IMG/VR virus record: IMGVR_UViG_3300046660_000716
Location: 1-64,000 of that record
Strand: one strand, 5' to 3'
Length of the DNA stretch: 64,000 nt
Part shown: positions 3,006 to 16,025 of the stretch, in pieces
Position numbering within the stretch: the stretch's first letter is position 1
Layout of the letters: the number at the start of each line of letters is the position of its first letter
The notes under the pieces: generated by a model
The model's input: the letters and a program-made list of their open reading frames with translations, nothing else
The model's database searches: none
What the model was told of the DNA's origin: nothing
Made by a program: the position numbers and the translations under genes

Positions 3006-4415
3006 GTGAGAATCACACTGAACCCGCTCGACGAGGGCTTCGACCCGTTCTTCACCGTAACGGACCACTCGCCGGTGATCGAGAAGACCGGCAAGTTCTC
3101 GGACGGCGGCGTGTTCTCCGAGCGCATCTTCGGCCGCATCCCGTCGAGCGGCCGCGAGTACGCGTGCGACTGCCCGTCCACGCAGAAGCCCATCGAGGGC
3201 CGGTTCTACGAGGGCACGATCTGCCCCAAGTGCAACGCCGCCGTCACCTGCCGCGACACGGTGTTTTCCAAGAAGGGCTGGGTCGACCTGGGCGCGCACC
3301 AGATCATCAGCCCGCTCTTCTTCCAGTACTTCGCCAAGGTGGTCGGTCCGACCCAGCTGGCCAAGATCGTCCACCAGAAGCGCGTCCTGACCATGGACGG
3401 CATCATCAAGGTGGCGGACGACGCCGGACCGTTCGACAACATGGGCCTCGCCGAGTTCTCCCGGCGCTGGCCCGAGGTCCTGGACCACTTCGAGGCCAAG
3501 AAGAAGTCCGATCCGCGCGTCGCCGAGTTCGCCCGCATCATCCGCGAGAACCCGACGATGGTGATGACCTCCAAGATCCTGGTTTTCAACCACATCCTGC
3601 GCCCGGCGCTGGTCGTGGAGAAGCAGATGATCTTCGACGAGGTCAACAACCTGTACAACCTGCTGATCAGCAACGCGTCGGTGCTGAACGACTACACGCC
3701 GGAGGAGGCCACGGACGGCAACGTCAACGCGGTCCTGTGGCGCATCCAGGAGCGGGCGAACGAGATCTTCGACCACGTCCTGTTCGTGCTGTCCGGCAAG
3801 GGCGGCTACCTGCGCGGCCAGCTGCTCGGCAACCGCATCAACTTCTGCGGCCGCATGGTCATCACCCCGCTCGGCCCCGGCCACGAGCAGGACGAGGTCG
3901 AGGTCCCGTACCTGGCCTTCCTGGAGATGTACCGCTTCCAGCTGACCAACCTGACCGCCCGCATGAAGGGCATCTCGCTAGCGAAGGCCAACGACCTGTG
4001 GCACGAGGCCCAGACCAAGTTCGACCCGTCGATGTACGCGGCGATGCTCCAGCTGATCAAGCGCGGCCCGGACGGCCACGGCCTGTACGCGCTGCTGAAT
4101 CGCAACCCGACCATCGCGTTCGGCTCCATCCTGCGCGTGCGCATCACCGGCATCAAGCGCGACCCGCTCGACTACACGATGAGCGTGCACAACGGCATCC
4201 TGAAGCTGATCGGCGGCGACTACGACGGCGACGTCTGCGCCCTGATCCCGTTCCTGGACCGCGACTTCGCCGACGCCTTCCGCGTCTTCGACCCGCGCCT
4301 CATGATGATCTCGCGCGACGGCCCACGCGTCAACCGCGCCATGCTCATGGACAAGGACCACGTCCTGGGCCTGAGCGTGCTGACCGAGGACGATCCGCGC
4401 CTCATGGTCGCATAG
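3006..4415 (+). CDS. phage multisubunit RNA polymerase beta-prime subunit, N-terminal/catalytic part (split RNAP)
   Basis: GVFSERIFG, Zn finger CDC...CPKC, LSGKGGYLR, NRNPTI, catalytic GGDYDGD; ends shortly after the catalytic loop. Confidence 0.9.
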   Translation: MRITLNPLDEGFDPFFTVTDHSPVIEKTGKFSDGGVFSERIFGRIPSSGREYACDCPSTQKPIEGRFYEGTICPKCNAAVTCRDTVFSKKGWVDLGAHQIISPLFFQYFAKVVGPTQLAKIVHQKRVLTMDGIIKVADDAGPFDNMGLAEFSRRWPEVLDHFEAKKKSDPRVAEFARIIRENPTMVMTSKILVFNHILRPALVVEKQMIFDEVNNLYNLLISNASVLNDYTPEEATDGNVNAVLWRIQERANEIFDHVLFVLSGKGGYLRGQLLGNRINFCGRMVITPLGPGHEQDEVEVPYLAFLEMYRFQLTNLTARMKGISLAKANDLWHEAQTKFDPSMYAAMLQLIKRGPDGHGLYALLNRNPTIAFGSILRVRITGIKRDPLDYTMSVHNGILKLIGGDYDGDVCALIPFLDRDFADAFRVFDPRLMMISRDGPRVNRAMLMDKDHVLGLSVLTEDDPRLMVA

Positions 4416-6290: not shown

Positions 6291-7220
6291 ATGACGATGC
6301 CAACAGCAACGACCGACAACTTCGTCGGTCTCTTCGGTCGCCAGGCCCCGATCGGCCTCGACATACCGCAGTGGGTCACCGTGTACGTGCCGCACGGCGC
6401 GTGGCAGAAGCAGGAGGTCGGCGGGACCGTCGGCGGTTTCATGGCGGTCCTGGTGGAGGGCCTGGCGGTGATCGGGCTCACCGGGGTCACGATCGTCATC
6501 GACGAGAACGTGAAGACCTGGTCCATGCACAGCCTGAACGACCTCGGGGCCACGCTCAAGGGCGCGGTCGCGCCGAGCCGGCCCTACTTCCGGATCATCG
6601 TCTCCAACGTGGCGGCGGCCCTCGAGAACGACGGGGCGACCATGAGCGGCCCTCTGCTCGTCGTCACCAACGGCGAGGCGGTCGCCGTGCCGGAGGCGGT
6701 GCTGAGGGGCGGCGACGCGATCTGCGTGGACGTCGCCACCACGATGGTCGCCAAGACCACGCACCCGTACGAGCTGTCGAAGGACGCCATTCAGGAGCTG
6801 GGCGTCAAGGACCTGTACAAGCAGCCGCAGTGGGCCGAGAAGTGGTCGCGGACCGTCCTGCGCTCGACCACCGCCCTGATGGCGCTGAACGTCCTGGCCA
6901 AGCCCGAGCGCTTCGGCATGAACCGCTTCTTCTTCGCCTGCGACTTCCTCGACGAGACGATCATGCAGGCCGTCAACGCGCGGGGTGTTCGCCCTCGCTT
7001 CCGCGACGAAAAGAAGACGCGAACCAAGAAAACGAAAGACGCAGCTGCTGTTCAGCCCGATCCACCGACCGACGGCCCCGCTCCCGCGTCGGCCGCTGGC
7101 ATGGGCGAGGCGATCCTGGAGGCGGCATCCGTCGTCTTCGGAACCGACCACGTGCGCCAGACGGCCGACTTCCTCCAGATGTTCGCCGACCAGATCAACA
7201 CGCAACCGCAATTCGCATAA
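6291..7220 (+). CDS. hypothetical protein, first gene of the putative Ubl-system operon
   Basis: 309 aa, AAGGAG RBS, 9-nt gap to the next gene. Confidence 0.75.
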   Translation: MTMPTATTDNFVGLFGRQAPIGLDIPQWVTVYVPHGAWQKQEVGGTVGGFMAVLVEGLAVIGLTGVTIVIDENVKTWSMHSLNDLGATLKGAVAPSRPYFRIIVSNVAAALENDGATMSGPLLVVTNGEAVAVPEAVLRGGDAICVDVATTMVAKTTHPYELSKDAIQELGVKDLYKQPQWAEKWSRTVLRSTTALMALNVLAKPERFGMNRFFFACDFLDETIMQAVNARGVRPRFRDEKKTRTKKTKDAAAVQPDPPTDGPAPASAAGMGEAILEAASVVFGTDHVRQTADFLQMFADQINTQPQFA

Positions 7221-7229
7221 GGAACCACC

Positions 7230-9155
7230 ATGGAAGAGACCCAAGCACCGGCAGCACCGCCTCGACGCGCCAGCAGCCCGGTAGTAGCTCCGGTCAGGGA
7301 CCGGCCCGCCGGATCGAGCACGCTGCGCTCCCTGCGCGAGCTCTCGCCGGAGGCGGTGGCGGAGCTGAATAAGGCGCCGTCCATCCCGACGTACATGTAC
7401 GTCGACGTCTCCACCTGGTACGTGGCAGACCAGAAGGGCATCCCGATCAAGGCCATTGAGGTCAGCAGTGTCCCGACCGGCTACGCGCGCACCATGTACA
7501 TCTCCTGGCTGAGCGAGCAGCGCTCGTTCTGCTGGCGGGGTATGCGATATGTGTACTCATGCCACCCGGACGAGCACCCTGGTGAGGACGACGTAATCGT
7601 CGACCGCAGCTACCAGTTCCCCCATCTGAGCGACAAAGATCCGAGCGCCATCGACATCCCGATCCTCCACGCCCTGCACTACCTGCTGAGCGGCCATTCG
7701 ACCCAGGTCACGGTGGACGCCTACGCGCTGGGCGTGGACCCGCTCGCCGCGATCCGCGACTGGTCGGCCGACAAGGTCGCTGCGTTCGGCCAGTGGGCCG
7801 TGTACATCCGCGGCTCCGTGACCGCCACGACCTTCACCGTGCTGGAGATGGCGTCGCTCTACGAGTCCGAGACCGAGGGCATCCTGCGCGGACGCCTCGA
7901 CTGGGTGCGCTTCCCGGACGGCGACGGCTGCGGCAACGTCCTCGCGGTCAGCGAGCTCAGCTACGTCGGCGAGGACTTCGAGGACGAGCTTGGCGTGCCG
8001 CACTGGCGGGTCGGCGACGAGTGGACGGCCAACGTCATGGACCGCGACGGCATACTGCACGCCCACGTGGACGTCAAGAACTTCGGCGTTGTGCCACGAT
8101 CCCGCGCCCACAAGCTCATGGAGCTCGCGGCCAAGATGAGCGGTGCGGTCGTCTCCAAGCTGAATCTGGCCTCGGGCGGCAACACGTTCGCGGACATCGA
8201 GGGCTTCTCGATGGAATCGCTCGACCAGATGATCGCGTTCATCGGCAGCGACTCGGTGGACAGCCTCGTCACCTGGGAGCAGCTGAAGCGAGGCCACACG
8301 CACATCAACCAGGTGCCGATCAGCACAACGATCGGCTACGAGGTGAGCCACTGGGTGGACGCAGCGCTGAGCAAGCTCGTGTGGGCCGGCGCCGCAGAGA
8401 TCACGTCCGCCCTGCGCACAGGCCGCGAGATCAGCATGGACACAATCGACATAAGCGACTTCGCGAAGATCGAGTTCCCGCAGAACGACCTGATCGAGTC
8501 CATCAAGATGCTCAAGGGCGGCACCGTGCGCGTGATCCTGAAGGACGTGGTCTACCCGACCCAGGTCCTGCGCCGCGGCATCACCTACATCGAGGACGAC
8601 GCGGGTTCGGTGCTGAGCGACATGTCCATCAGGGCGTTCGACCTGGACTTCCGCGGCAACCTGACCAAGTTCCCGAACGCCACGGCGTACGCCGACGAGG
8701 CGTGCAAGCACATCGCGCGTCACACCAACATCTCCAGCGGCGGTCGCGTGTGCCTGGGCAACATCAACCAGGGTATGACCGAGGCCGAGATCGCCGCGCG
8801 CGGCGGCTTCGGCATGCCGTCCGTGGGGGACTTCCTGCAGATGCTCCGCCAGTGCAACCTGGACAGCGCGTACCACGGGGGCCGCGAGTTCGTCCTGGCC
8901 GACCCGGAATCGGTCGAGCAGGGCCACTACTCGAACGCGCCGAAGTGGCGCATCCCCGGCCTGCGCCGCATCGAGGTCGACGACTTCGCGGAGCTGCGCA
9001 AGCAGTTCGCAGCCCAGGCCGCCGCTGAGGCGGAGGAAGACGGCGAGGAGGCCGACCCGATCGCCGAGGGCGCCGCCGATGCCGAACCGGCGACGGAGGC
9101 CGAGCCGGAAACTACCGAAGAACCAACAGAGGAGGCCGCAGATGCCGATAACTAG
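7230..9155 (+). CDS. large protein with C-terminal prokaryotic E2 (ubiquitin-conjugating)-like domain
   Basis: HTNISSGGRVCLGN (8721-8762) matches the E2 HPNxxxxGxICL active-site pattern; adjacent ThiF gene; acidic tail. Confidence 0.7.
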   Translation: MEETQAPAAPPRRASSPVVAPVRDRPAGSSTLRSLRELSPEAVAELNKAPSIPTYMYVDVSTWYVADQKGIPIKAIEVSSVPTGYARTMYISWLSEQRSFCWRGMRYVYSCHPDEHPGEDDVIVDRSYQFPHLSDKDPSAIDIPILHALHYLLSGHSTQVTVDAYALGVDPLAAIRDWSADKVAAFGQWAVYIRGSVTATTFTVLEMASLYESETEGILRGRLDWVRFPDGDGCGNVLAVSELSYVGEDFEDELGVPHWRVGDEWTANVMDRDGILHAHVDVKNFGVVPRSRAHKLMELAAKMSGAVVSKLNLASGGNTFADIEGFSMESLDQMIAFIGSDSVDSLVTWEQLKRGHTHINQVPISTTIGYEVSHWVDAALSKLVWAGAAEITSALRTGREISMDTIDISDFAKIEFPQNDLIESIKMLKGGTVRVILKDVVYPTQVLRRGITYIEDDAGSVLSDMSIRAFDLDFRGNLTKFPNATAYADEACKHIARHTNISSGGRVCLGNINQGMTEAEIAARGGFGMPSVGDFLQMLRQCNLDSAYHGGREFVLADPESVEQGHYSNAPKWRIPGLRRIEVDDFAELRKQFAAQAAAEAEEDGEEADPIAEGAADAEPATEAEPETTEEPTEEAADADN

Positions 9156-9813
9156 AGCAGAGGTGGGTCGCCTCGAAATGCGACCCATCATGGCCAACAC
9201 CATGCGACGCCGCCTCAACCTGCTGGGAGTGGGCGGCGTCGGCAGCAACTTCATGCGGCTGATGTGCCACCACGAGGACGAGGTCATGGTCCGCATCTTC
9301 GACATGGACACGGTCGAGCTGCACAACCTGAACCGCGCGAGCATGTTCACGATCGACGACGCGTTCAGCAACGCGAGCAAGGTGAGCGCGATCGCTGCGT
9401 CGTGCAAGCGGCTCGCCAGCGAGCTGTCCGTTACCCCGAGCAACGCCGAGATCGACAGGGACACGGTGCTGCCCAAGGGCTTGGTGATCGACGCGCGGGA
9501 CACGCTGAACCCGACCAAGATCCCGGCGGCGACCTGGCTGAAGCTGGCCTACGACGGCGGCAGCGAGATGAGCTTCACCTGGCTGCCGCACATCGTCTCG
9601 AAACACGTCGTCGACCTGAGCAACGGTCGCAGCAACGCGTACGCCGTCGTGCCGAGCTTCTACGTGCCGGCGGCGCTGCTGTCCATCCTGGCCATGCGGT
9701 TCATGCAGTTCGAGAACTTCCTGGAGATCACCGAGATGCGCGCCGGCACCTTCCACATGAACCTTGACGAGATGGTCGACTCCGTCTCATACGAATGGGA
9801 GCCACCGCAATGA
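9142..9813 (+). CDS. ThiF/MoeB/E1-like adenylyltransferase
   Basis: LLGVGGVGS nucleotide-binding loop, FDMDTVELHNLNR, SKV, VIDARD; GAGGAGG RBS; overlaps end of the E2-like gene. Confidence 0.88.
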   Translation: MPITRAEVGRLEMRPIMANTMRRRLNLLGVGGVGSNFMRLMCHHEDEVMVRIFDMDTVELHNLNRASMFTIDDAFSNASKVSAIAASCKRLASELSVTPSNAEIDRDTVLPKGLVIDARDTLNPTKIPAATWLKLAYDGGSEMSFTWLPHIVSKHVVDLSNGRSNAYAVVPSFYVPAALLSILAMRFMQFENFLEITEMRAGTFHMNLDEMVDSVSYEWEPPQ

Positions 9814-10712
9814 GCGACACGCGCATCGAAATCGACCCAAGCACGGCGCGAGTCAGGTCCGTGACGTACCAGGACGTGACTGGCGAGATGATCACCGTCA
9901 CCGAAGGAGCGGTGGCGCCGGCCTTCGAGAACATCGCGTCGGCGCATCGCCACCACGCGCATTCCGATGTCGCCGACATGGCGACCCAGACCATGGCTGA
10001 GATCGAAGCGGCCATCGGCGAGCCGCCGATCATCTCGATCCAAGCTCCGGTGACCGAGGACGTGATGGTGCCGGAGGAGGACACGGCCGAAGTGCAGACC
10101 GTTCTACGCTTCCTCGAGGACGACTCGATCGACATGAAGCGCACCGTGGGCAAGATCCGCTCCCTGCCGCCGGAGCGCGTCCGCGACGCGCTCTCCGTGG
10201 CCTACGCCGACATCATCGGCGGCCGAGCCGGTCCTGCCCCGAGCATCGCCCGCGCTCTGCACATGGTGGTCTCGCCGTTCCTGACCGCGCTGCCGGGCCT
10301 GGTCCGCGACCACGGACCGCAGAACGAGCAGCTGCGCCGCCTCACCGCCGAGATCCTGGTGATCCTCAAGGGCGTGTACGTGGCCGAGTCCAAGTCGCGC
10401 AATAACACGCTGATCATCCGCCCCCTGCGCGGATCCGTCACGGGCCGCGACCTGACGCCGATGCAGCTGCTGCAGATGCAGCTCAAGATGTCGGCGACCC
10501 TGGAGCGCGAGCTGGCGGAGCTCGCCAGCAACGGCGGCTTCTGGAGCGTATTCATGAACGCCCACCAGTACCGCCAGATGGCGCTGCACTCCCCGGTCAA
10601 CCTGATCAACACCATCGCGGAGATGGGAACTTACCTCAAGGCTGTCTCGTTCAAGACCAAATTGGACAATCAACAGCTTAAGATTCTTCAGGCGTTCTTC
10701 CGTACTGCCTGA
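9810..10712 (+). CDS. hypothetical alpha-helical protein in the Ubl cluster
   Basis: ATGA overlap with the E1-like gene; ~300 aa. Confidence 0.75.
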   Translation: MSDTRIEIDPSTARVRSVTYQDVTGEMITVTEGAVAPAFENIASAHRHHAHSDVADMATQTMAEIEAAIGEPPIISIQAPVTEDVMVPEEDTAEVQTVLRFLEDDSIDMKRTVGKIRSLPPERVRDALSVAYADIIGGRAGPAPSIARALHMVVSPFLTALPGLVRDHGPQNEQLRRLTAEILVILKGVYVAESKSRNNTLIIRPLRGSVTGRDLTPMQLLQMQLKMSATLERELAELASNGGFWSVFMNAHQYRQMALHSPVNLINTIAEMGTYLKAVSFKTKLDNQQLKILQAFFRTA

Positions 10713-10745
10713 AGCACCAGCAACAATCCCACTCACTACGATTGA

Positions 10746-10765
10746 CGGGGCCGTGCACGGCCCCG
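10746..10765. promoter_or_regulatory. perfect 20-bp palindrome just upstream of an RBS
   Basis: CGGGGCCGTGCACGGCCCCG. Confidence 0.55.
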
Positions 10766-10781
10766 CTTGAAAGGAATCACA

Positions 10782-11522
10782 ATGGCAACAGCTACTCCAC
10801 GCGGCGCATCCTCCATCCCTGACCTGGAATTCCTGAAGGCGTACAACGACCCGAAGGCATCCAACGCCCAGATCCTGGAGGCCCTGCAAACCGACTGGAC
10901 TGCCGTGGGCGTCAAGCTGCGCTCCGCACGTCTGCAGCTGCACACCCTGGTGACCCGCACCGGCGGCGCCAAGGGTACCGCCGAAGCGAAGGACAAGGAC
11001 GACCTGGCGCTGGAAGCCCAGATCTTCAAGAAGCACGAGATCGTGCAGCCGCAGCCGAACGGCCCCTACATCTCGCTGCAAGAGCGCATCGACGCGGGCA
11101 AGATCAAGGTCAACTCCAAGCTGGAAGTGACCGAGCTGGAATCCAAGGGCGAGACCGCCAAGCCGGCCGCGAAGGCCGACGCCCCGGCCAAGGGCAAAGC
11201 TGACGCCAAGGCAGACAAGGCGAAGCCCGCCGACAAGGCCAAGGACTCGGGCAAGGCCGCCGCGGAAGAGCCAGCCAAGCCGACCAAGACCAAGGTAGCC
11301 GCCGATCCGCGCGCCTTCGTGTTCCAGGCCAACATCTTCAGCACGAACTACGAGTTCGCCGGCGCGTCGAAGAACGACGCCACCAACGCCCTCTTCACCA
11401 AGCTGCAAGAGCTGAACGTTAGCAAGGTCCAGATCTCCGACAACAACGGCCGCAGCTGCGGCTTCGCCGACATCGTGCACGGCGGCAAGTACAAGTTCAG
11501 CAAGCAGCTGACCGCGGCGTAA
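10782..11522 (+). CDS. candidate ubiquitin-like modifier: N-terminal domain, Lys/Ala-rich linker, C-terminal putative beta-grasp domain
   Basis: AAGGA RBS; last ~70 aa read as beta-beta-alpha-beta-beta-beta ending SKQLTAA; lies between the E1-like and JAB genes. CDS is solid, function is inferred. Confidence 0.5.
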   Translation: MATATPRGASSIPDLEFLKAYNDPKASNAQILEALQTDWTAVGVKLRSARLQLHTLVTRTGGAKGTAEAKDKDDLALEAQIFKKHEIVQPQPNGPYISLQERIDAGKIKVNSKLEVTELESKGETAKPAAKADAPAKGKADAKADKAKPADKAKDSGKAAAEEPAKPTKTKVAADPRAFVFQANIFSTNYEFAGASKNDATNALFTKLQELNVSKVQISDNNGRSCGFADIVHGGKYKFSKQLTAA

Positions 11523-11592: not shown

Positions 11593-12483
11593 ATGCGCAA
11601 CGATCACCTCATCAGCACGGGCCTGCAGCTTCACAGCAAGGCGTTCGTCGTGATGCCGCAGGACATCTGCCGCACCATGGCCGCGGCTCTGTCCGCCATC
11701 CCCGACCCGAGCCTCGAGTACGGCATGTACCTGAAGGGCGACTGGGATCCGAAGACCTGCACCGTCATCGTTCGCCCCGGCGAATTCTATGTACCGGAGC
11801 AGGTCGTGAGCGGCGCCTCCATCCAGTTCACCGAGGAGCCGCCCGGCCCGGAGTGGAACGTGGTCATCCACCGTCACCCGCCGGGCGTGAACCGCTTCTC
11901 CAGCACCGACGAGAACTCGATCAACGAGGAGTTCCTCGCCTCGGTCCTGTTCATGCCGCCGTGGGGCTTCCCCGACGCCGTGGTCAACATCCCGCTGGCG
12001 CCAGGCTCCAAGTTCCAGACCCGCGCCGTTGTCAATCCCGAGGGCACGCTGCTGGACATGCCAGAGGAGCTGACCGCCAAGATCAAGGCCAACGTCAAGC
12101 GCTACACGGCTCCGAAGGTCGAGAAGATGGGCGCCGGCCACGTCACCACCCTGGGACCGGACGAGCGCGCGTCCCTCCAGCGCGAGCTCGGCGAGAGCGG
12201 CCTGGATTTCGACAATGGTGGCTACGGACGTCCGCTGCCCGGCGTGGGCACCGGTAAGATCGGTCAGGCCCGCCAGGTGGCCGGCGGCGGCACCATCCGC
12301 GCGCTGGGCTACGAGCCTGACAAGGTCCGCCCGCGCATCCAGCCGATCCGCGGCGGCAAGGCCAAGCCGGGTCCGCTCAACGGCGACGCCGCCGGACTGG
12401 TGGCCGCAGGCTTCCACGCCTCCGACATCGAGGACATCGCCGACGCGCAGCGCGAGAGCCAGATGATCCGCGTGCAGGGCTAA
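11593..12483 (+). CDS. JAB/MPN+ (JAMM) metalloprotease
   Basis: upstream Glu in LEYGMYL and HRHPPGVNRFSSTD = HxH-x7-S-x2-D; low-complexity C-terminal half. Confidence 0.85.
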   Translation: MRNDHLISTGLQLHSKAFVVMPQDICRTMAAALSAIPDPSLEYGMYLKGDWDPKTCTVIVRPGEFYVPEQVVSGASIQFTEEPPGPEWNVVIHRHPPGVNRFSSTDENSINEEFLASVLFMPPWGFPDAVVNIPLAPGSKFQTRAVVNPEGTLLDMPEELTAKIKANVKRYTAPKVEKMGAGHVTTLGPDERASLQRELGESGLDFDNGGYGRPLPGVGTGKIGQARQVAGGGTIRALGYEPDKVRPRIQPIRGGKAKPGPLNGDAAGLVAAGFHASDIEDIADAQRESQMIRVQG

Positions 12484-12504: not shown

Positions 12505-13245
12505 GTGGACAAAATCAAGAAGGTCAAGCTCTTCATGGGCTTGGGGGTGGCCGCGCTGCTGATACTCATCGGCCCGCTGCTTTGGATGCTGCTGCAGGCC
12601 GGGCTCGCTCTGAGCCTGGTCGGCGCGCTCGGCGTCGCCATGGCCGGGGCCATCCGACTGCTGCCGCTGGCCGGGCAGAAGCTGGAGAATAAGATCCTCG
12701 AACTGCGCAAGGCCGAGGCTCGCAAGAACCCGATCGAGCAGAAGCAGAACGAACTCCTGCGCCGCCGCAAGCAGATCGAGATGGCCAAGAAGGCGCTCGT
12801 CGGCGCCGGCTCCCAGATCGAGGGCATGGAGGACATGATCCGCGAGCAGGCCAGGAAGGACCCGGACTGCGACATGTCGCAGGAGCGCCGCGGCCTCGAG
12901 AAGATGAAGGCGTTCTACCAGGGCAACCTGGAGAAGCTGCGCTACCGCGAGGGTAAGATCGCCGAGTTCGCCAAGAACATCGAGCGCGACATCTTCAAGT
13001 GGGAATTCACCCAGAAGGGCAAGGCCACCATCGAGGGACTGAACGTTAACGACCAGGAATCCGTGCTGAACGAGATCCTGACCAGCGAGGCCAACCGCGC
13101 CGTCAACGACGAATTCAACCAGATCTGCGCCGAGATGGACATGGAAGTCAGCACCATGAACGCCCAAGGCGTGATCACTTACGAGGGCGGCCTGACGCTG
13201 GACATGACCGGCTACAAGGTGCCCGAAATGGCGAAGGTGAACTGA
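12505..13245 (+). CDS. membrane-anchored coiled-coil protein (possibly PspA-like)
   Basis: GTG start; two N-terminal hydrophobic helices then long charged helical region. Confidence 0.6.
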   Translation: MDKIKKVKLFMGLGVAALLILIGPLLWMLLQAGLALSLVGALGVAMAGAIRLLPLAGQKLENKILELRKAEARKNPIEQKQNELLRRRKQIEMAKKALVGAGSQIEGMEDMIREQARKDPDCDMSQERRGLEKMKAFYQGNLEKLRYREGKIAEFAKNIERDIFKWEFTQKGKATIEGLNVNDQESVLNEILTSEANRAVNDEFNQICAEMDMEVSTMNAQGVITYEGGLTLDMTGYKVPEMAKVN

Positions 13246-13246
13246 C

Positions 13247-13396
13247 ATGAACTACTGGAAGATCCTCAAGATCGCCGCGCCCATCCTGGTCGTGATCATC
13301 ACCGCCGTCGTCTGCGCCTTGGGTCAGCCCTCGTCGCCGGCCGACGCCCCGGCACCGGCTACCCAGCCGGCCGCCGGCCCCAACTACAACCTGTGA
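13247..13396 (+). CDS. small single-TM protein
   Basis: MNYWKILKIAAPILVVIITAVVCALGQPSSP...NYNL; fills the gap between neighbours. Confidence 0.6.
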   Translation: MNYWKILKIAAPILVVIITAVVCALGQPSSPADAPAPATQPAAGPNYNL

Positions 13397-13419
13397 CACC
13401 AACGATGAAGGACAGCACC

Positions 13420-14409
13420 ATGAACGTGATGCAACCGAAGTACATCAAGGGCCTGCTGGCCGCCATGCTGGTCATGATGGTTTCCGCCTTCGCCCACGCC
13501 GCGCCGGAAGAGGGCGGCCCGGCCGCCTCCTGCGGCGAGGACGCGCTGGAGATCGCCACCGGCGCCAAGGGCAAGGGCTACTCCCTGCTGTACGCGAACC
13601 TGGAGAAGGTCTGCGGCCAGGTCGTCCCGATGTGCGAGCACCCGACCAACGGCGGCCTGGACAACGTGAACGCGCTGTCCGTCAAGGAAGCCGACCTGGG
13701 CTTCGCCCAGTTGGACACCGCGAGCAGCATGAAGAGCGACGAGAACATCGCCGCCCTGGTCTCCGTGGCCACGCTGAACACGAACTTCATGCACACCGTC
13801 GTGTCGAGCTCCGGCTTCAACGTGCCCGGTCCGAAGAAGTGGGGCGGCATGAAGGACGGCGACCCGATCCAGGTGCAGCTGCGCTCCTTCTCCGACCTGA
13901 AGGGCCGCACGATCGGCGCCGTCGGCTCGGCCGACCTGCTGATCCGCCAGCTGAACAAGCAGCTGGGCTACAACATGACCATCCGCGGCTTCAAGAGCGA
14001 CGCCGACGCGATCCAGGCCATGAAGAACCCGGCCAACATCGTGGCCTTCGTGACGGTCAGCGGATGGCCGCACGGCGCCCTGAAGAACCTGACGCCGGAC
14101 AGCGGCCTGACCCTGGCGAGCTTCGACGCGGTCGTGGCCGCCCCGTACATCGTCAAGCCGCTGAACTACCGCAGCATGGCCGTGTACAACAGCAACACGC
14201 TGGGCGTGCCCAACCTGCTGCTGGCCCGCCAGTTCACGGGCGAGAAGGCCGCCCAGGTCAGCAAGCTGCGCGCCTGCATGGCCTCCAGCCTGACCAAGCT
14301 CCAGCAGGGCAAGTTCGAGCCGGGCTGGAACGAGATGAAGAGCCTGGACGGCGCCAACGACTGGCCGAAGTTCGTGCCGTCGTCGGCCGCCGCGCCGCGC
14401 AAGAAGTAA
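13420..14409 (+). CDS. TAXI-family TRAP-type periplasmic solute-binding-like protein
   Basis: signal peptide; IATGAKGKGY, TNGGLDNVNAL, ADLGFAQLD, SFSDLKGRTI. Confidence 0.8.
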   Translation: MNVMQPKYIKGLLAAMLVMMVSAFAHAAPEEGGPAASCGEDALEIATGAKGKGYSLLYANLEKVCGQVVPMCEHPTNGGLDNVNALSVKEADLGFAQLDTASSMKSDENIAALVSVATLNTNFMHTVVSSSGFNVPGPKKWGGMKDGDPIQVQLRSFSDLKGRTIGAVGSADLLIRQLNKQLGYNMTIRGFKSDADAIQAMKNPANIVAFVTVSGWPHGALKNLTPDSGLTLASFDAVVAAPYIVKPLNYRSMAVYNSNTLGVPNLLLARQFTGEKAAQVSKLRACMASSLTKLQQGKFEPGWNEMKSLDGANDWPKFVPSSAAAPRKK

Positions 14410-14717: not shown

Positions 14718-16025
14718 ATGGCATTCAAAGACGTCACAATCTCCCGGCCCGTGTCCGTAGTGGCACCGGTCATCAGCAGCCTCGCGGGAGCCCTGCGCCG
14801 GTACGTCATGAGCGTGCTGCCGACCGAGTACGTGAGGGACTACTTCATCGACACGGAGCTTCCGATCGTGCGCTTCCAGCAGCGCCGCAAGTTCCGGCCG
14901 ATGATGCACTCGCAGCTGGACATTCGCAAGCTGCCGCTCCTGAGCATCAAGGTGGACTCGACGGCCGACCCATCGCCGTTCGCCACCGGCACGACGTTCT
15001 GGACCAGCACCCGCTTCCTGGACGACCCGACCCGGCTGGCCCGCCTGATCGTCGACGACGACAACCTGCGCTACGTCGGATACGAGACCGAGCGCATGGT
15101 CATGCGGTTCCAGGTGTCGTTCACCGTGGAGACTGACCTCAAGGCCGCCGAGCTGATGATGTACCTGCGCCGCAGCCTGCCGATCGACCAGAAGGTGTAC
15201 CTTAACGACGTGGACGTCGCCACCGAGGTGCCGATGGACGTGCTGCGCCCGATCTGGACCGACATGGGGCTGGGCGACGGCACGGACCCCGACGACGTGG
15301 CGGAATTCCGCGAGTACCTGACGGCCTCGACCGCCGGCCTGGTGGAGCAGGTGACGAGCTCCTCGACGGGCCGCCTCGTCTTCGCCTTCCACTACCGGGC
15401 GAACCCGATCGTCAACATCACCTCGGTCCCTTCCATGACGCCCATCCGGGACGGCAACGTCGTGACGAAGGCGCAGGTCGACATCCCGTTCGAGATGGAC
15501 GTCATGGTGCCGGTGGCGTACGCGCTGCGCCAGGAGCAGTCCCTGGGGTCGGTCACCCCCATAAACCCCACGCCGTTCGACATCGGCGACGAGGGCGCGG
15601 GGGCGTACTACAGCGCCCAGCACCGGACGCGCCCGCCGCAGACCGTGGCGGACAACCTGACGCTCGTCTACTTCACCGCGGTCGTGACGGCCGACGTGGA
15701 TCCCGCCCGCCCGGGCGCCCCCGACGTGACGGACCTGTCCACGTCCGTGGACGGCAGGATGCGGGCGTACATCCACGCCCTCCTGTCGGGCGGAGCACAG
15801 GACAAGGTCGAGGCCAAGCTCTGGCTGGACGGCGACGAGATCGGGGCCGGGTGGGAGTTCGACCCGGCCACGTGGGCGCTGACCATCGACAAGGTGGCGT
15901 TCCAGCCGCGCCAGAAGTACCACTTTGGACTGTACACCGACCTGTCCCGCCTCGACGAGCTCGCGCCGGTCGTCCGCAGGCCGCAGGCCCCGAGCCCCAC
16001 GTTCAAGCGCATCAACACCGTGTAG
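14718..16025 (+). CDS. hypothetical protein, probably virion structural
   Basis: 435 aa, beta-rich, phage-typical codon use, near structural genes. Confidence 0.6.
   Translation: MAFKDVTISRPVSVVAPVISSLAGALRRYVMSVLPTEYVRDYFIDTELPIVRFQQRRKFRPMMHSQLDIRKLPLLSIKVDSTADPSPFATGTTFWTSTRFLDDPTRLARLIVDDDNLRYVGYETERMVMRFQVSFTVETDLKAAELMMYLRRSLPIDQKVYLNDVDVATEVPMDVLRPIWTDMGLGDGTDPDDVAEFREYLTASTAGLVEQVTSSSTGRLVFAFHYRANPIVNITSVPSMTPIRDGNVVTKAQVDIPFEMDVMVPVAYALRQEQSLGSVTPINPTPFDIGDEGAGAYYSAQHRTRPPQTVADNLTLVYFTAVVTADVDPARPGAPDVTDLSTSVDGRMRAYIHALLSGGAQDKVEAKLWLDGDEIGAGWEFDPATWALTIDKVAFQPRQKYHFGLYTDLSRLDELAPVVRRPQAPSPTFKRINTV

Follow-up and report, generated by a model that had tools for sequence, protein, structure and literature searches.

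An uncultivated giant bacteriophage encodes a predicted ubiquitin-like protein (Ubl) that ends in Ala-Ala instead of Gly-Gly and is flanked by the phage's own predicted E1, E2 and JAB peptidase genes, so that the locus looks like a phage-borne ubiquitin-type tagging system with an unusual tail. The gene was found in the window, here the 64,000-nt stretch covering positions 1 to 64,000 of IMG/VR record IMGVR_UViG_3300046660_000716, which derives from a complete 259-kb virus genome. It occupies positions 10782-11522 on the plus strand, from the ATG at 10782 to the stop codon at 11520-11522, and encodes 246 aa, with a Shine-Dalgarno sequence (AAAGGAA) 7 nt upstream of the start. A scan for promoters and terminators around the gene found nothing above shuffled sequences. 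The sequence-only reading that prompted this analysis had noted a beta-grasp order in the last ~70 residues, a short tail of small residues, a Lys-rich linker and an N-terminal domain, and this observation is confirmed, apart from a correction to the linker given below.

The protein has three parts. In the AlphaFold2 model, the N-terminal domain (aa 1-121; 10782-11144) is confidently folded, with pLDDT of 86-97, and consists of helices and two hairpins. Its conserved core spans about aa 10-70 (EFLxAYN...DWTAVGVKLRS), and N22, N28, L35, V44, L46, R47, S48, R59 and G94 are invariant. The linker (aa 122-173; 11145-11300) is disordered, with pLDDT below 50. The beta-grasp domain (aa 174-241; 11301-11504) has strands at 179-185 and 188-194, a helix at 197-210, a strand at 216-220, a short bridge and 3-10 turn at 225-230 and a last strand at 236-241, with pLDDT of about 92-96, and is followed by the tail QLTAA (aa 242-246; 11505-11519). 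The segment order given in the sequence-only reading matches this model. Foldseek hits in the PDB are Caldiarchaeum ubiquitin, SUMO1, NEDD8 and the bacterial Ubl of the Bil E1-E2-Ubl complex (8tyx, 8tyz), at probability 0.99-1.0 and TM by target of 0.5-0.6. VIA-align gave Z of 5.3-7.5, with nearly all of the 50 listed matches in the ubiquitin superfold. These scores are modest (Foldseek E-values of about 1e-2; Z below 8), and Pfam, PHROGs and PADLOC gave no hit for the Ubl. A fold other than beta-grasp, or a tail lacking conservation, had been set out beforehand as grounds for dropping the modifier reading; the predicted fold is a beta-grasp, and the tail is conserved.

The Ala-Ala end is conserved far beyond chance. 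A homolog search returned 47 sequences, and all 45 full-length homologs at the 90% clustering level carry (K/R)Q(L/T)TAA. A HMMER search extended the family to 53 representatives; among 49 representatives clustered at 50% identity, the final dipeptide is AA in 35, AG in 6, GA in 4, GG in 1 and SG in 1, with 2 others. Conservation stops exactly after this dipeptide: 17 representatives end there, 18 carry 1-5 extra residues and 14 carry longer, mutually unrelated extensions of up to about 50 aa and of at least four types, which is the pattern of Ubl precursors. For example, two near-identical homologs, P0043 and P0044, differ only in having or lacking a 48-aa extension. The position and length of the tail are those of conjugated Ubls, but the usual terminal Gly (mostly Gly-Gly) is absent. 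In contrast to the tail, the Lys-rich composition of the linker belongs to the window's protein, with 14 Lys in a 58-aa stretch (K/A/D/P-rich) against 0-2 in the 22 homologs of one alignment, which are Thr/Ala/Ser/Pro-rich; one distant member, from locus L013, also has a basic linker.

The gene lies in a conserved module, all on the plus strand. Upstream, a conserved 309-aa protein of unknown function (6291-7220) precedes a 641-aa protein (7230-9155; 485-641 aa across the family) with a C-terminal UBC-fold E2 domain at about aa 385-600. Its active-site motif HTNISSGGRVCLG is at 8721-8759, with Cys508 at 8751-8753, and one related locus, L010, has HPNIGSGGSVCLG. The H, N, I, G, V, C and G of this HxN...C region are invariant in 24 sequences, and the profile aligns to the HPN...C motif of UBE2F. 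The model has a pLDDT of 84, and all of the top 50 Foldseek PDB hits are E2 enzymes, though at weak E-values of about 1e-2. Sequence-only PDB searches of this protein and of the JAB protein gave nothing significant; the E2 assignment rests on the motif plus the fold.

Next in the module is a minimal ThiF-type E1 of 207 aa (9190-9813; Pfam ThiF, 2e-12), with the motifs GVGGVG at 9226-9243, DMDTVELHNLNR at 9301-9336 and DARDT at 9490-9504. Its PDB hits are UBA7, MoeB, MccB and BubCD, the last a weak sequence match. In an alignment of 36 homologs, the adenylation motifs (GxGGxG, DxD, NLNR, K64 and DxRD) are intact and invariant, but no Cys is. Between the E1 and the Ubl is a protein of unknown function (9795-10712), which varies from 204 to 594 aa in relatives, has a conserved C-terminus (KL..QQLK.LQAFFR) and gave no Pfam, PHROG or PADLOC hit. 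Downstream of the Ubl is a 296-aa JAB/JAMM metallopeptidase (11593-12483), with Glu42 at 11716-11718 and HRHPPGVNRFSSTD at 11869-11910. The complete E...HxHx7SxxD motif is conserved in five loci and in L010, L011 and L014, although the Pfam Prok-JAB hit is weak (0.019). The same components occur in the window and in related loci L001, L007-L011, L013 and L014. In L013 the gene order is shuffled, and a region related to the 309-aa protein is fused to the E1; the shuffled order argues for a functional rather than a merely inherited linkage.

The family was found only in uncultivated jumbo-phage contigs. Megablast of the 6-kb region and tblastn of the Ubl, the E2 domain, the E1 and a distant AT-rich Ubl found no match among 50,697 GenBank phages, in which the window's own record may be masked. 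Pattern scans of IMG/VR and JGI metagenomes returned only 1 and 4 loci. No member was found in 185,579 prokaryote species genomes, where the scan gave a single false positive, an ABC-transporter binding protein that shares DWTAVGVK. The N-terminal domain was likewise without a convincing match: a profile search against the PDB gave a Med22 hit at E 0.005 that we judge spurious, a Pfam scan of 15 members, AFDB clusters and BFVD gave nothing convincing, and ESM Atlas feature and shape searches yielded only weak HTH, trihelix and Myb-like hints on which we do not rely. "Cargo", the term used for this domain in the sequence-only reading, is a label and not a finding; its fold and function are unassigned.

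The best explanation, which we hold with fair confidence, is that the gene encodes the modifier of a phage-borne ubiquitin-type conjugation cascade. What the computational analysis itself shows is that the C-terminal 73 residues form a ubiquitin-like beta-grasp with a five-residue flexible tail, that the last two residues are small, that conservation ends directly after them, and that the gene is always accompanied by a ThiF-type adenylating enzyme, a protein with a UBC-fold domain carrying HxN...Cys, and a JAMM peptidase. The mechanism is our inference. In this view the E1, probably a homodimer like MoeB and ThiF, would bind the beta-grasp, thread the QLTAA tail into its ATP site and adenylate the terminal Ala carboxylate. 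The acyl group would pass to Cys508 of the E2 domain, either directly or through a non-cysteine E1 intermediate, because the E1 has no conserved Cys, and then to an amino group of a target, tethering the N-terminal domain to that target through the flexible linker. The JAMM peptidase would remove the extensions in those relatives that carry them and probably reverse conjugates, while the window's protein already ends at Ala-Ala and would need no processing. A predicted E1-Ubl complex gave an ipSAE of 0.37 against 0.00 in three controls, with Ubl residues 240-246 touching E1 residues 13, 15-18, 102-106 and 119-123, in the GxGGxG and ARDTL motifs. This is only weak support and could reflect memory of E1-Ubl complexes; neither adenylation nor isopeptide linkage was assayed here. 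There is precedent in the Bil and Bub systems, where JAB peptidases expose the Ubl C-terminus and Ubls carry diverse N-terminal domains (PMC10557695, PMC11601596, PMC11601603). However, all characterised protein-conjugated Ubls that we could check use a C-terminal Gly, and in E. aridi BilA an Ala following that Gly blocks conjugation (PMC10557695), so an E1 that adenylates Ala is an inference. The short, Cys-less E1 leaves the route from adenylate to E2 unclear, no biochemical data exist, and no E3, target, phenotype or benefit to the phage is known.

The interpretation offered in the sequence-only reading is thus partly supported. The beta-grasp, the conserved and functional-looking boundary of small residues, the preceding N-terminal domain and flexible linker, both conserved across the family, and the flanking E1, E2 and JAB genes all hold, but the suggestion that linker lysines could accept chains does not concern a conserved property. 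It had also stated that Cap2 can conjugate through a C-terminal Gly or Ala. We could not verify this, as the Cap2 preprint (bioRxiv 10.1101/2022.03.31.486616) mentions only the C-terminal glycine of V. cholerae cGAS, and a 2025 E1 review did not confirm it.

Its alternative, that the JAB peptidase cleaves after the internal His-Gly-Gly (aa 233-235) to expose a canonical di-Gly end, is contradicted by the comparative data and is very improbable. Gly234 is nearly always Gly, and Gly-Gly is present in the window and in close homologs, but the dipeptide is GG in only 19 of 49 representatives and GD in 13, others having GA, NG, GE and further variants. It also lies in the turn before the last core strand, such that cleavage would remove part of the fold, and the residues after it (Y237, K241, Q242, T244, A245 and A246) are among the most conserved of the protein.

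Two other possibilities were considered and rejected as unlikely. The beta-grasp protein could be a carrier of an activated acyl or thiocarboxylate group, as in ThiS, MoaD, CysO and QbsE, with the E1 adenylating the tail for sulfur transfer or small-molecule biosynthesis, for example of a nucleotide or cofactor modification made by the phage, and the JAB peptidase trimming the precursor or releasing a product, as Mec+ and QbsD do. The MoeB/ThiF-sized E1 without a conserved catalytic Cys would fit, and JAB peptidases accompany sulfur-carrier beta-grasp proteins with C-terminal extensions in the CysO-Mec+ and QbsE-QbsD systems, a point of established knowledge not tested here. However, sulfur-carrier pathways have no E2, whereas a UBC-fold protein with invariant HxN...Cys is always present here; no rhodanese, cysteine desulfurase or biosynthetic enzyme was detected among the module's proteins; and sulfur carriers are small single-domain proteins ending in GG, without a conserved 120-aa N-terminal domain. 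Slightly less improbable is that the beta-grasp is a non-covalent adaptor or regulatory subunit, as UBX, PB1 and RBD domains are, or a virion or assembly protein, whose tail binds a partner, for example by plugging the E1 or JAB active site, while the neighbouring enzymes act on another substrate. Many beta-grasp domains are not conjugated, RBD, PB1 and UBX domains score as well as ubiquitin in the fold searches, the terminal residues are not Gly, and the module lies near lysis and tail-fibre genes in related contigs. Yet the small dipeptide followed by no, short or long unrelated extensions is hard to explain without processing and use of the free carboxylate, no other candidate substrate with a conserved tail is encoded in the module, and the predicted complex places the tail at the E1 ATP site.

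Among known systems, type II Bil (BilABCD) also has a beta-grasp Ubl (BilA), sometimes with an N-terminal domain, separate E1 (BilD) and Cys-dependent E2 (BilB) proteins, a JAMM peptidase (BilC), and a conserved small C-terminal residue followed by a few non-conserved residues that the JAB removes (PMC10557695). [quoted passage not shown] The E2 domain here sits at the end of a 485-641-aa protein, the module has two extra conserved proteins, and it lies in phage genomes, not bacterial defence islands. PADLOC gave no hit for the Ubl, the E2 protein or the JAB, only weak E1-E2 (Cap2-like) matches to the E1. The Bub (6E/DUF6527) operons share an E1 without a catalytic Cys and JAB processing of a precursor (PMC11601596, PMC11601603), but the Bub E2 uses Ser, whereas the E2 here keeps HxN...Cys, Bub Ubls end in Gly, and no hit to the DUF6527 (PF20137) serine protease was found in our module. 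The Bub E1 uses a crossover-loop Tyr in oxyester chemistry; in the phage E1, Y121 (in LAYDGG, after the DxRD motif) and Y151 are invariant, which, with neither a structure nor an assay to assign them a role, speaks neither for nor against such a step.

In type II CBASS, an E1-type adenylation of a flexible C-terminal tail, transfer to an E2 Cys and a JAB (Cap3) that cleaves exactly after the last residue are all found, but the Cap2 substrate is a CD-NTase and not a beta-grasp, and E1 and E2 are fused in Cap2. Eukaryotic Ubl precursors (ubiquitin, SUMO, NEDD8 and UFM1) have a beta-grasp, a short flexible tail and variable extensions removed by a protease before E1 activation, with a Gly or Gly-Gly terminus and cysteine-protease or JAMM DUBs of other families. 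There is no sequence similarity to them (6-15% identity in structural alignments). Phage lambda-type tail assembly proteins with ubiquitin-like and JAB domains (Iyer, Burroughs and Aravind 2006, PMC1779556) are also phage-encoded beta-grasp and JAB proteins, but have no E1 or E2, a point not tested here.

A more far-reaching possibility, which we put forward only tentatively, is that a clade of uncultivated jumbo phages carries its own complete cascade, activated on a C-terminal alanine by an E1 that has no catalytic cysteine and hands the modifier to a canonical HPN-Cys E2, and uses it to attach a conserved, possibly nucleic-acid-binding, N-terminal domain covalently to host or virion proteins. 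Bacterial ubiquitin-like conjugation (type II CBASS, Bil and Bub) has so far been described as host machinery, mostly antiphage; this would be a viral use of it, offensive or structural. If the module works as proposed, the small E1 and the compact module would be attractive for protein-ligation tools. The terminal-residue rule would also loosen, since a naturally conserved Ala-Ala end, with distant relatives drifting to AG, GA and GG, would show that the requirement is "small" and not "Gly", and would provide a natural series for studying E1 and JAB specificity. Finally, the roles in the arms race would widen, as the conservation of a full E1-E2-Ubl-peptidase set across high-GC and low-GC jumbo phages suggests that viruses of bacteria use protein tagging for their own ends, such as host takeover, counter-defence or virion assembly.

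The window is part of a complete, 259,338-bp virus record with direct terminal repeats and has a G+C content of 65%. Its multisubunit RNA polymerase beta' piece (3006-4415) is most similar, at 33%, to that of the Yersinia jumbo phage phiR1-37, and next to the AR9/PBS1 group. The ORF of interest is real, running from the ATG at 10782 to the stop at 11520-11522 and encoding 246 aa, with an AAAGGAA ribosome-binding site 7 nt upstream. Between the stop of the preceding gene (10712) and this start lies a perfect G+C-rich hairpin, GGGGCCG-TGCA-CGGCCCC, at about 10745-10763, which has no T-run and was not called as a terminator. It may be an RNA-stability or attenuation element that sets expression of the Ubl apart from that of the enzymes.

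An AlphaFold2 model built on 23 homologs shows three parts: a confidently folded N-terminal domain (aa 1-121, pLDDT 86-97), a disordered linker (aa 122-173, pLDDT below 50) and a C-terminal domain. The latter has strands at 179-185 and 188-194, a helix at 197-210, a strand at 216-220, a short bridge and turn at 225-230 and a strand at 236-241, followed by the tail QLTAA (242-246), which is the segment order proposed in the sequence-only reading. That reading would have been undone by a prediction of some other fold, but the C-terminal domain is a ubiquitin-like beta-grasp, as far as prediction can show. Foldseek against the PDB returned Caldiarchaeum ubiquitin, SUMO1/2, NEDD8, UFM1 and the bacterial Ubl of the Bil system (8tyx, 8tyz), with probabilities of 0.99-1.0 and TM by target of 0.5-0.6, although the E-values are only about 1e-2. 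An aligner that does not depend on Foldseek listed 50 matches with Z of 5.3-7.5, all to residues about 173-246, and almost all of these are ubiquitin-superfold domains (RBD, SUMO, ubiquitin, ISG15, SAMP1 and Bil Ubl). Searches of AFDB clusters, BFVD and the ESM Atlas gave the same picture. No single score is strong, and it is the agreement between methods that carries weight.

The most informative result comes from the tail, the conservation of which had likewise been put forward as a point on which the idea could fail. All 45 full-length homologs from the 90%-identity search carry (K/R)Q(L/T)TAA. An exhaustive HMMER search of 1.84 billion representatives identified 53 family members, all of 170-304 aa apart from two fragments of 72 and 89 aa, and most show both the N-terminal and the beta-grasp part. 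In an alignment of 49 of them, the five-residue tail keeps its length, and its last two residues are AA in 35, AG in 6, GA in 4, GG in 1 and SG in 1, with 2 others. Conservation stops exactly after this dipeptide: 17 proteins end there, 18 continue for 1-5 residues (S, A, N, C, YQ, GA, AK, DIG and others) and the remaining 14 carry longer extensions of at least four unrelated kinds. Unrelated extensions after the AA dipeptide were seen in the homologs P0002-P0034, P0024, P0028 and P0044, and in the related locus L011 at 8518-9201. Two of the longer types are conserved modules of about 50 aa each, '...WPGMxYEQGV...NPMED' and '...HDELV...ESLDV', and these may be released peptides with a function of their own rather than mere pro-peptides. 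The near-identical pair P0043 and P0044 differ only in having or lacking one such extension. The pattern is one of an invariant small dipeptide at a fixed distance from the last strand, with dispensable extensions of any sequence, and the drift from AA to AG, GA and GG within one family argues that the two alanines occupy the place of the canonical di-glycine.

Two further proposals of the sequence-only reading, that a JAB peptidase might cleave after the internal His-Gly-Gly (233-235) to expose a di-Gly end and that lysines of the linker could accept chains, did not hold. The internal motif is not a processing site, since the dipeptide is GG in only 19 of 49 representatives and GD in 13, it sits in the turn before the last core strand, and the residues after it are among the most conserved of the protein. 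The linker lysines are not conserved either; the window's protein has 14 Lys in 58 residues, whereas the 22 aligned homologs have 0-2 and are Thr/Ala/Ser/Pro-rich. One distant member, at L013:6001-6597, with a tail ending in 'RQTLAG', independently has a Lys/Arg-rich linker (KPAAKATPKTTAKTPAKPKA...RRRPR), so that basic linkers have arisen at least twice in the family. The linker is therefore a variable spacer, and chain formation on its lysines cannot be a family property. The lysines that are conserved are K45 in the N-terminal domain and K207, K215 and K241 in the beta-grasp.

In the window and in eight other loci (L001, L007-L011, L013 and L014), all from metagenomic contigs, several of them 50-250 kb with the same RNAP subunit nearby, the gene is accompanied by the same partners. 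One is a 485-641-aa E2 protein whose C-terminal about 215 aa are highly conserved, with H, N, I, G, V, C and G invariant in the motif HTNISSGGRVCLG (HPNIGSGGSVCLG in L010, HPNVHESMLCVG in L013). A profile of this region aligns precisely to the HPN...Cys active site of UBE2F, although without significance, and its AlphaFold2 model (pLDDT 84) finds only E2 enzymes among the top 50 PDB matches. In the window, the end of this protein (9020-9155) carries a 45-aa acidic Ala/Glu/Pro/Thr-rich tail that its relatives lack; the annotated E1 ORF from ATG 9079 would overlap it, but the called E1 starts at 9190.

The E1 is a ThiF-family protein of 207-248 aa (207 aa in the window, 9190-9813), for which Pfam gives ThiF at 2e-12 and the weak PDB hits are UBA7, MoeB, MccB and BubCD. 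The motifs GxGGxG, DxD, NLNR, K64 and DxRD are invariant, but there is no invariant cysteine in 36 homologs. In the same alignment Y121 (in LAYDGG, just after the DxRD motif), Y151 and S156 are invariant, which recalls the Cys-less, Tyr-using E1 of Bub systems, yet the partner E2 keeps a canonical HxN...Cys site. The E1 of the distant relative L010 (6001-6747) ends in '...NATQLAA', which resembles the Ubl tail (KQLTAA or KQMSAA) and could be chance, or a pseudo-substrate or self-modification tail.

The other members are a variable protein of 204-594 aa, of unknown function but with a conserved C-terminus, the Ubl itself, and a JAMM peptidase with the complete E...HxHx7SxxD motif. In L011 two tandem JAMM paralogs (9278-10114 and 10124-10831) follow the Ubl gene, which could separate processing from deconjugation. 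In L013 the gene order is E1-unknown-E2-Ubl-JAB, with the conserved upstream protein of the module fused to the E1, and the association therefore survives rearrangement. L014 comes from an AT-rich phage, so the module spans phages of very different base composition. In L009 only, a 212-aa Cys-rich ORF (6617-7255) that looks like a mobile (homing-endonuclease-like) insertion lies between the E1 and the next module gene. In the window, two genes (12505-13245 and 13393-14409) that are absent at this place in L001 and L008 lie between the JAB and the conserved 435-aa protein (14718-16025, phrog_21946). One is a phrog_27316 membrane-anchored coiled-coil-like protein and the other a secreted NMT1/TRAP-type solute-binding-like protein (Pfam NMT1_3, 8e-7), which is unusual cargo for a phage.

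A complex predicted with two E1 copies, ATP, Mg and Ubl residues 170-246 scored an ipSAE of 0.37 (median of three runs), against 0.00 for three controls, which rates only as weak support. The confident contacts involve Ubl residues 205, 208-209, 213-218, 225-228, 230 and the tail 240-246, and, on the E1 side, residues 13 and 15-18 (the GxGGxG loop), 102-106 (the Asp motif) and 119-123. However, the model may know this geometry from solved E1-Ubl complexes, and we therefore take the result only as consistent with the proposal, not as proof. The geometry is the canonical one, with the tail in the adenylation site.

The module is proposed to work like the Bil, Bub and Cap2 conjugation systems, but it does not qualify as any of them. 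Compared with Bil, there is no conserved Gly, no IAD-AAD-CYS E1 and no PADLOC recognition of the Ubl, E2 or JAB. Compared with Bub, the E2 has Cys, not Ser, and no DUF6527 protease was found in the module. In Cap2 terms, the substrate here is a beta-grasp, and E1 and E2 are separate proteins. Ubls with diverse N-terminal domains are already known in Bil and Bub operons (PMC11601603), so that part of the architecture is not new. Full-text literature searches found no description of a phage-encoded E1-E2-Ubl-JAB module, and the 2021 survey of 224 jumbo phages mentions ubiquitin only in passing. The family is absent from 50,697 GenBank phage records and from species-representative prokaryote genomes, although these absences reflect the limits of our searches and are not proof of novelty. 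What is new, as far as we could find, is the conserved Ala-Ala end, the minimal Cys-less E1 paired with a canonical HPN-Cys E2, and the location in phage genomes.

The observation of a candidate modifier ending in Ala-Ala is confirmed. Its interpretation is supported in part, in that the Ubl with a small-residue tail stands whereas the linker-lysine and internal-HGG ideas are rejected. The fold (by prediction), the conservation of the tail, the precursor-like boundary and the presence and intact motifs of E1, E2 and JAB rest directly on the analysis, and the mechanism is inferred from them. In this view, the E1 adenylates the terminal Ala, and the acyl group is transferred to Cys508 of the E2, either directly or through a non-Cys E1 residue; the invariant Y121, in the segment after the Asp motif, recalls the Tyr oxyester of Bub E1 (PMC11601596). 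The Ubl would then be ligated to target amines, and the JAB would process extension-bearing precursors and reverse conjugates. The chief uncertainties are whether an E1 really activates a terminal alanine, how the Cys-less E1 passes the modifier on, and what the phage tags. The N-terminal domain, with its conserved core 'EFLxAYN...DWTAVGVKLRS', is more conserved than the beta-grasp and consists of helices and hairpins; it is of unknown function, has no convincing match in any of the searches, and the HTH/trihelix hints are too weak to use. The window's protein ends at AA and would be ready for activation as made, and its conserved N-terminal domain would be tethered to the target through the flexible linker.
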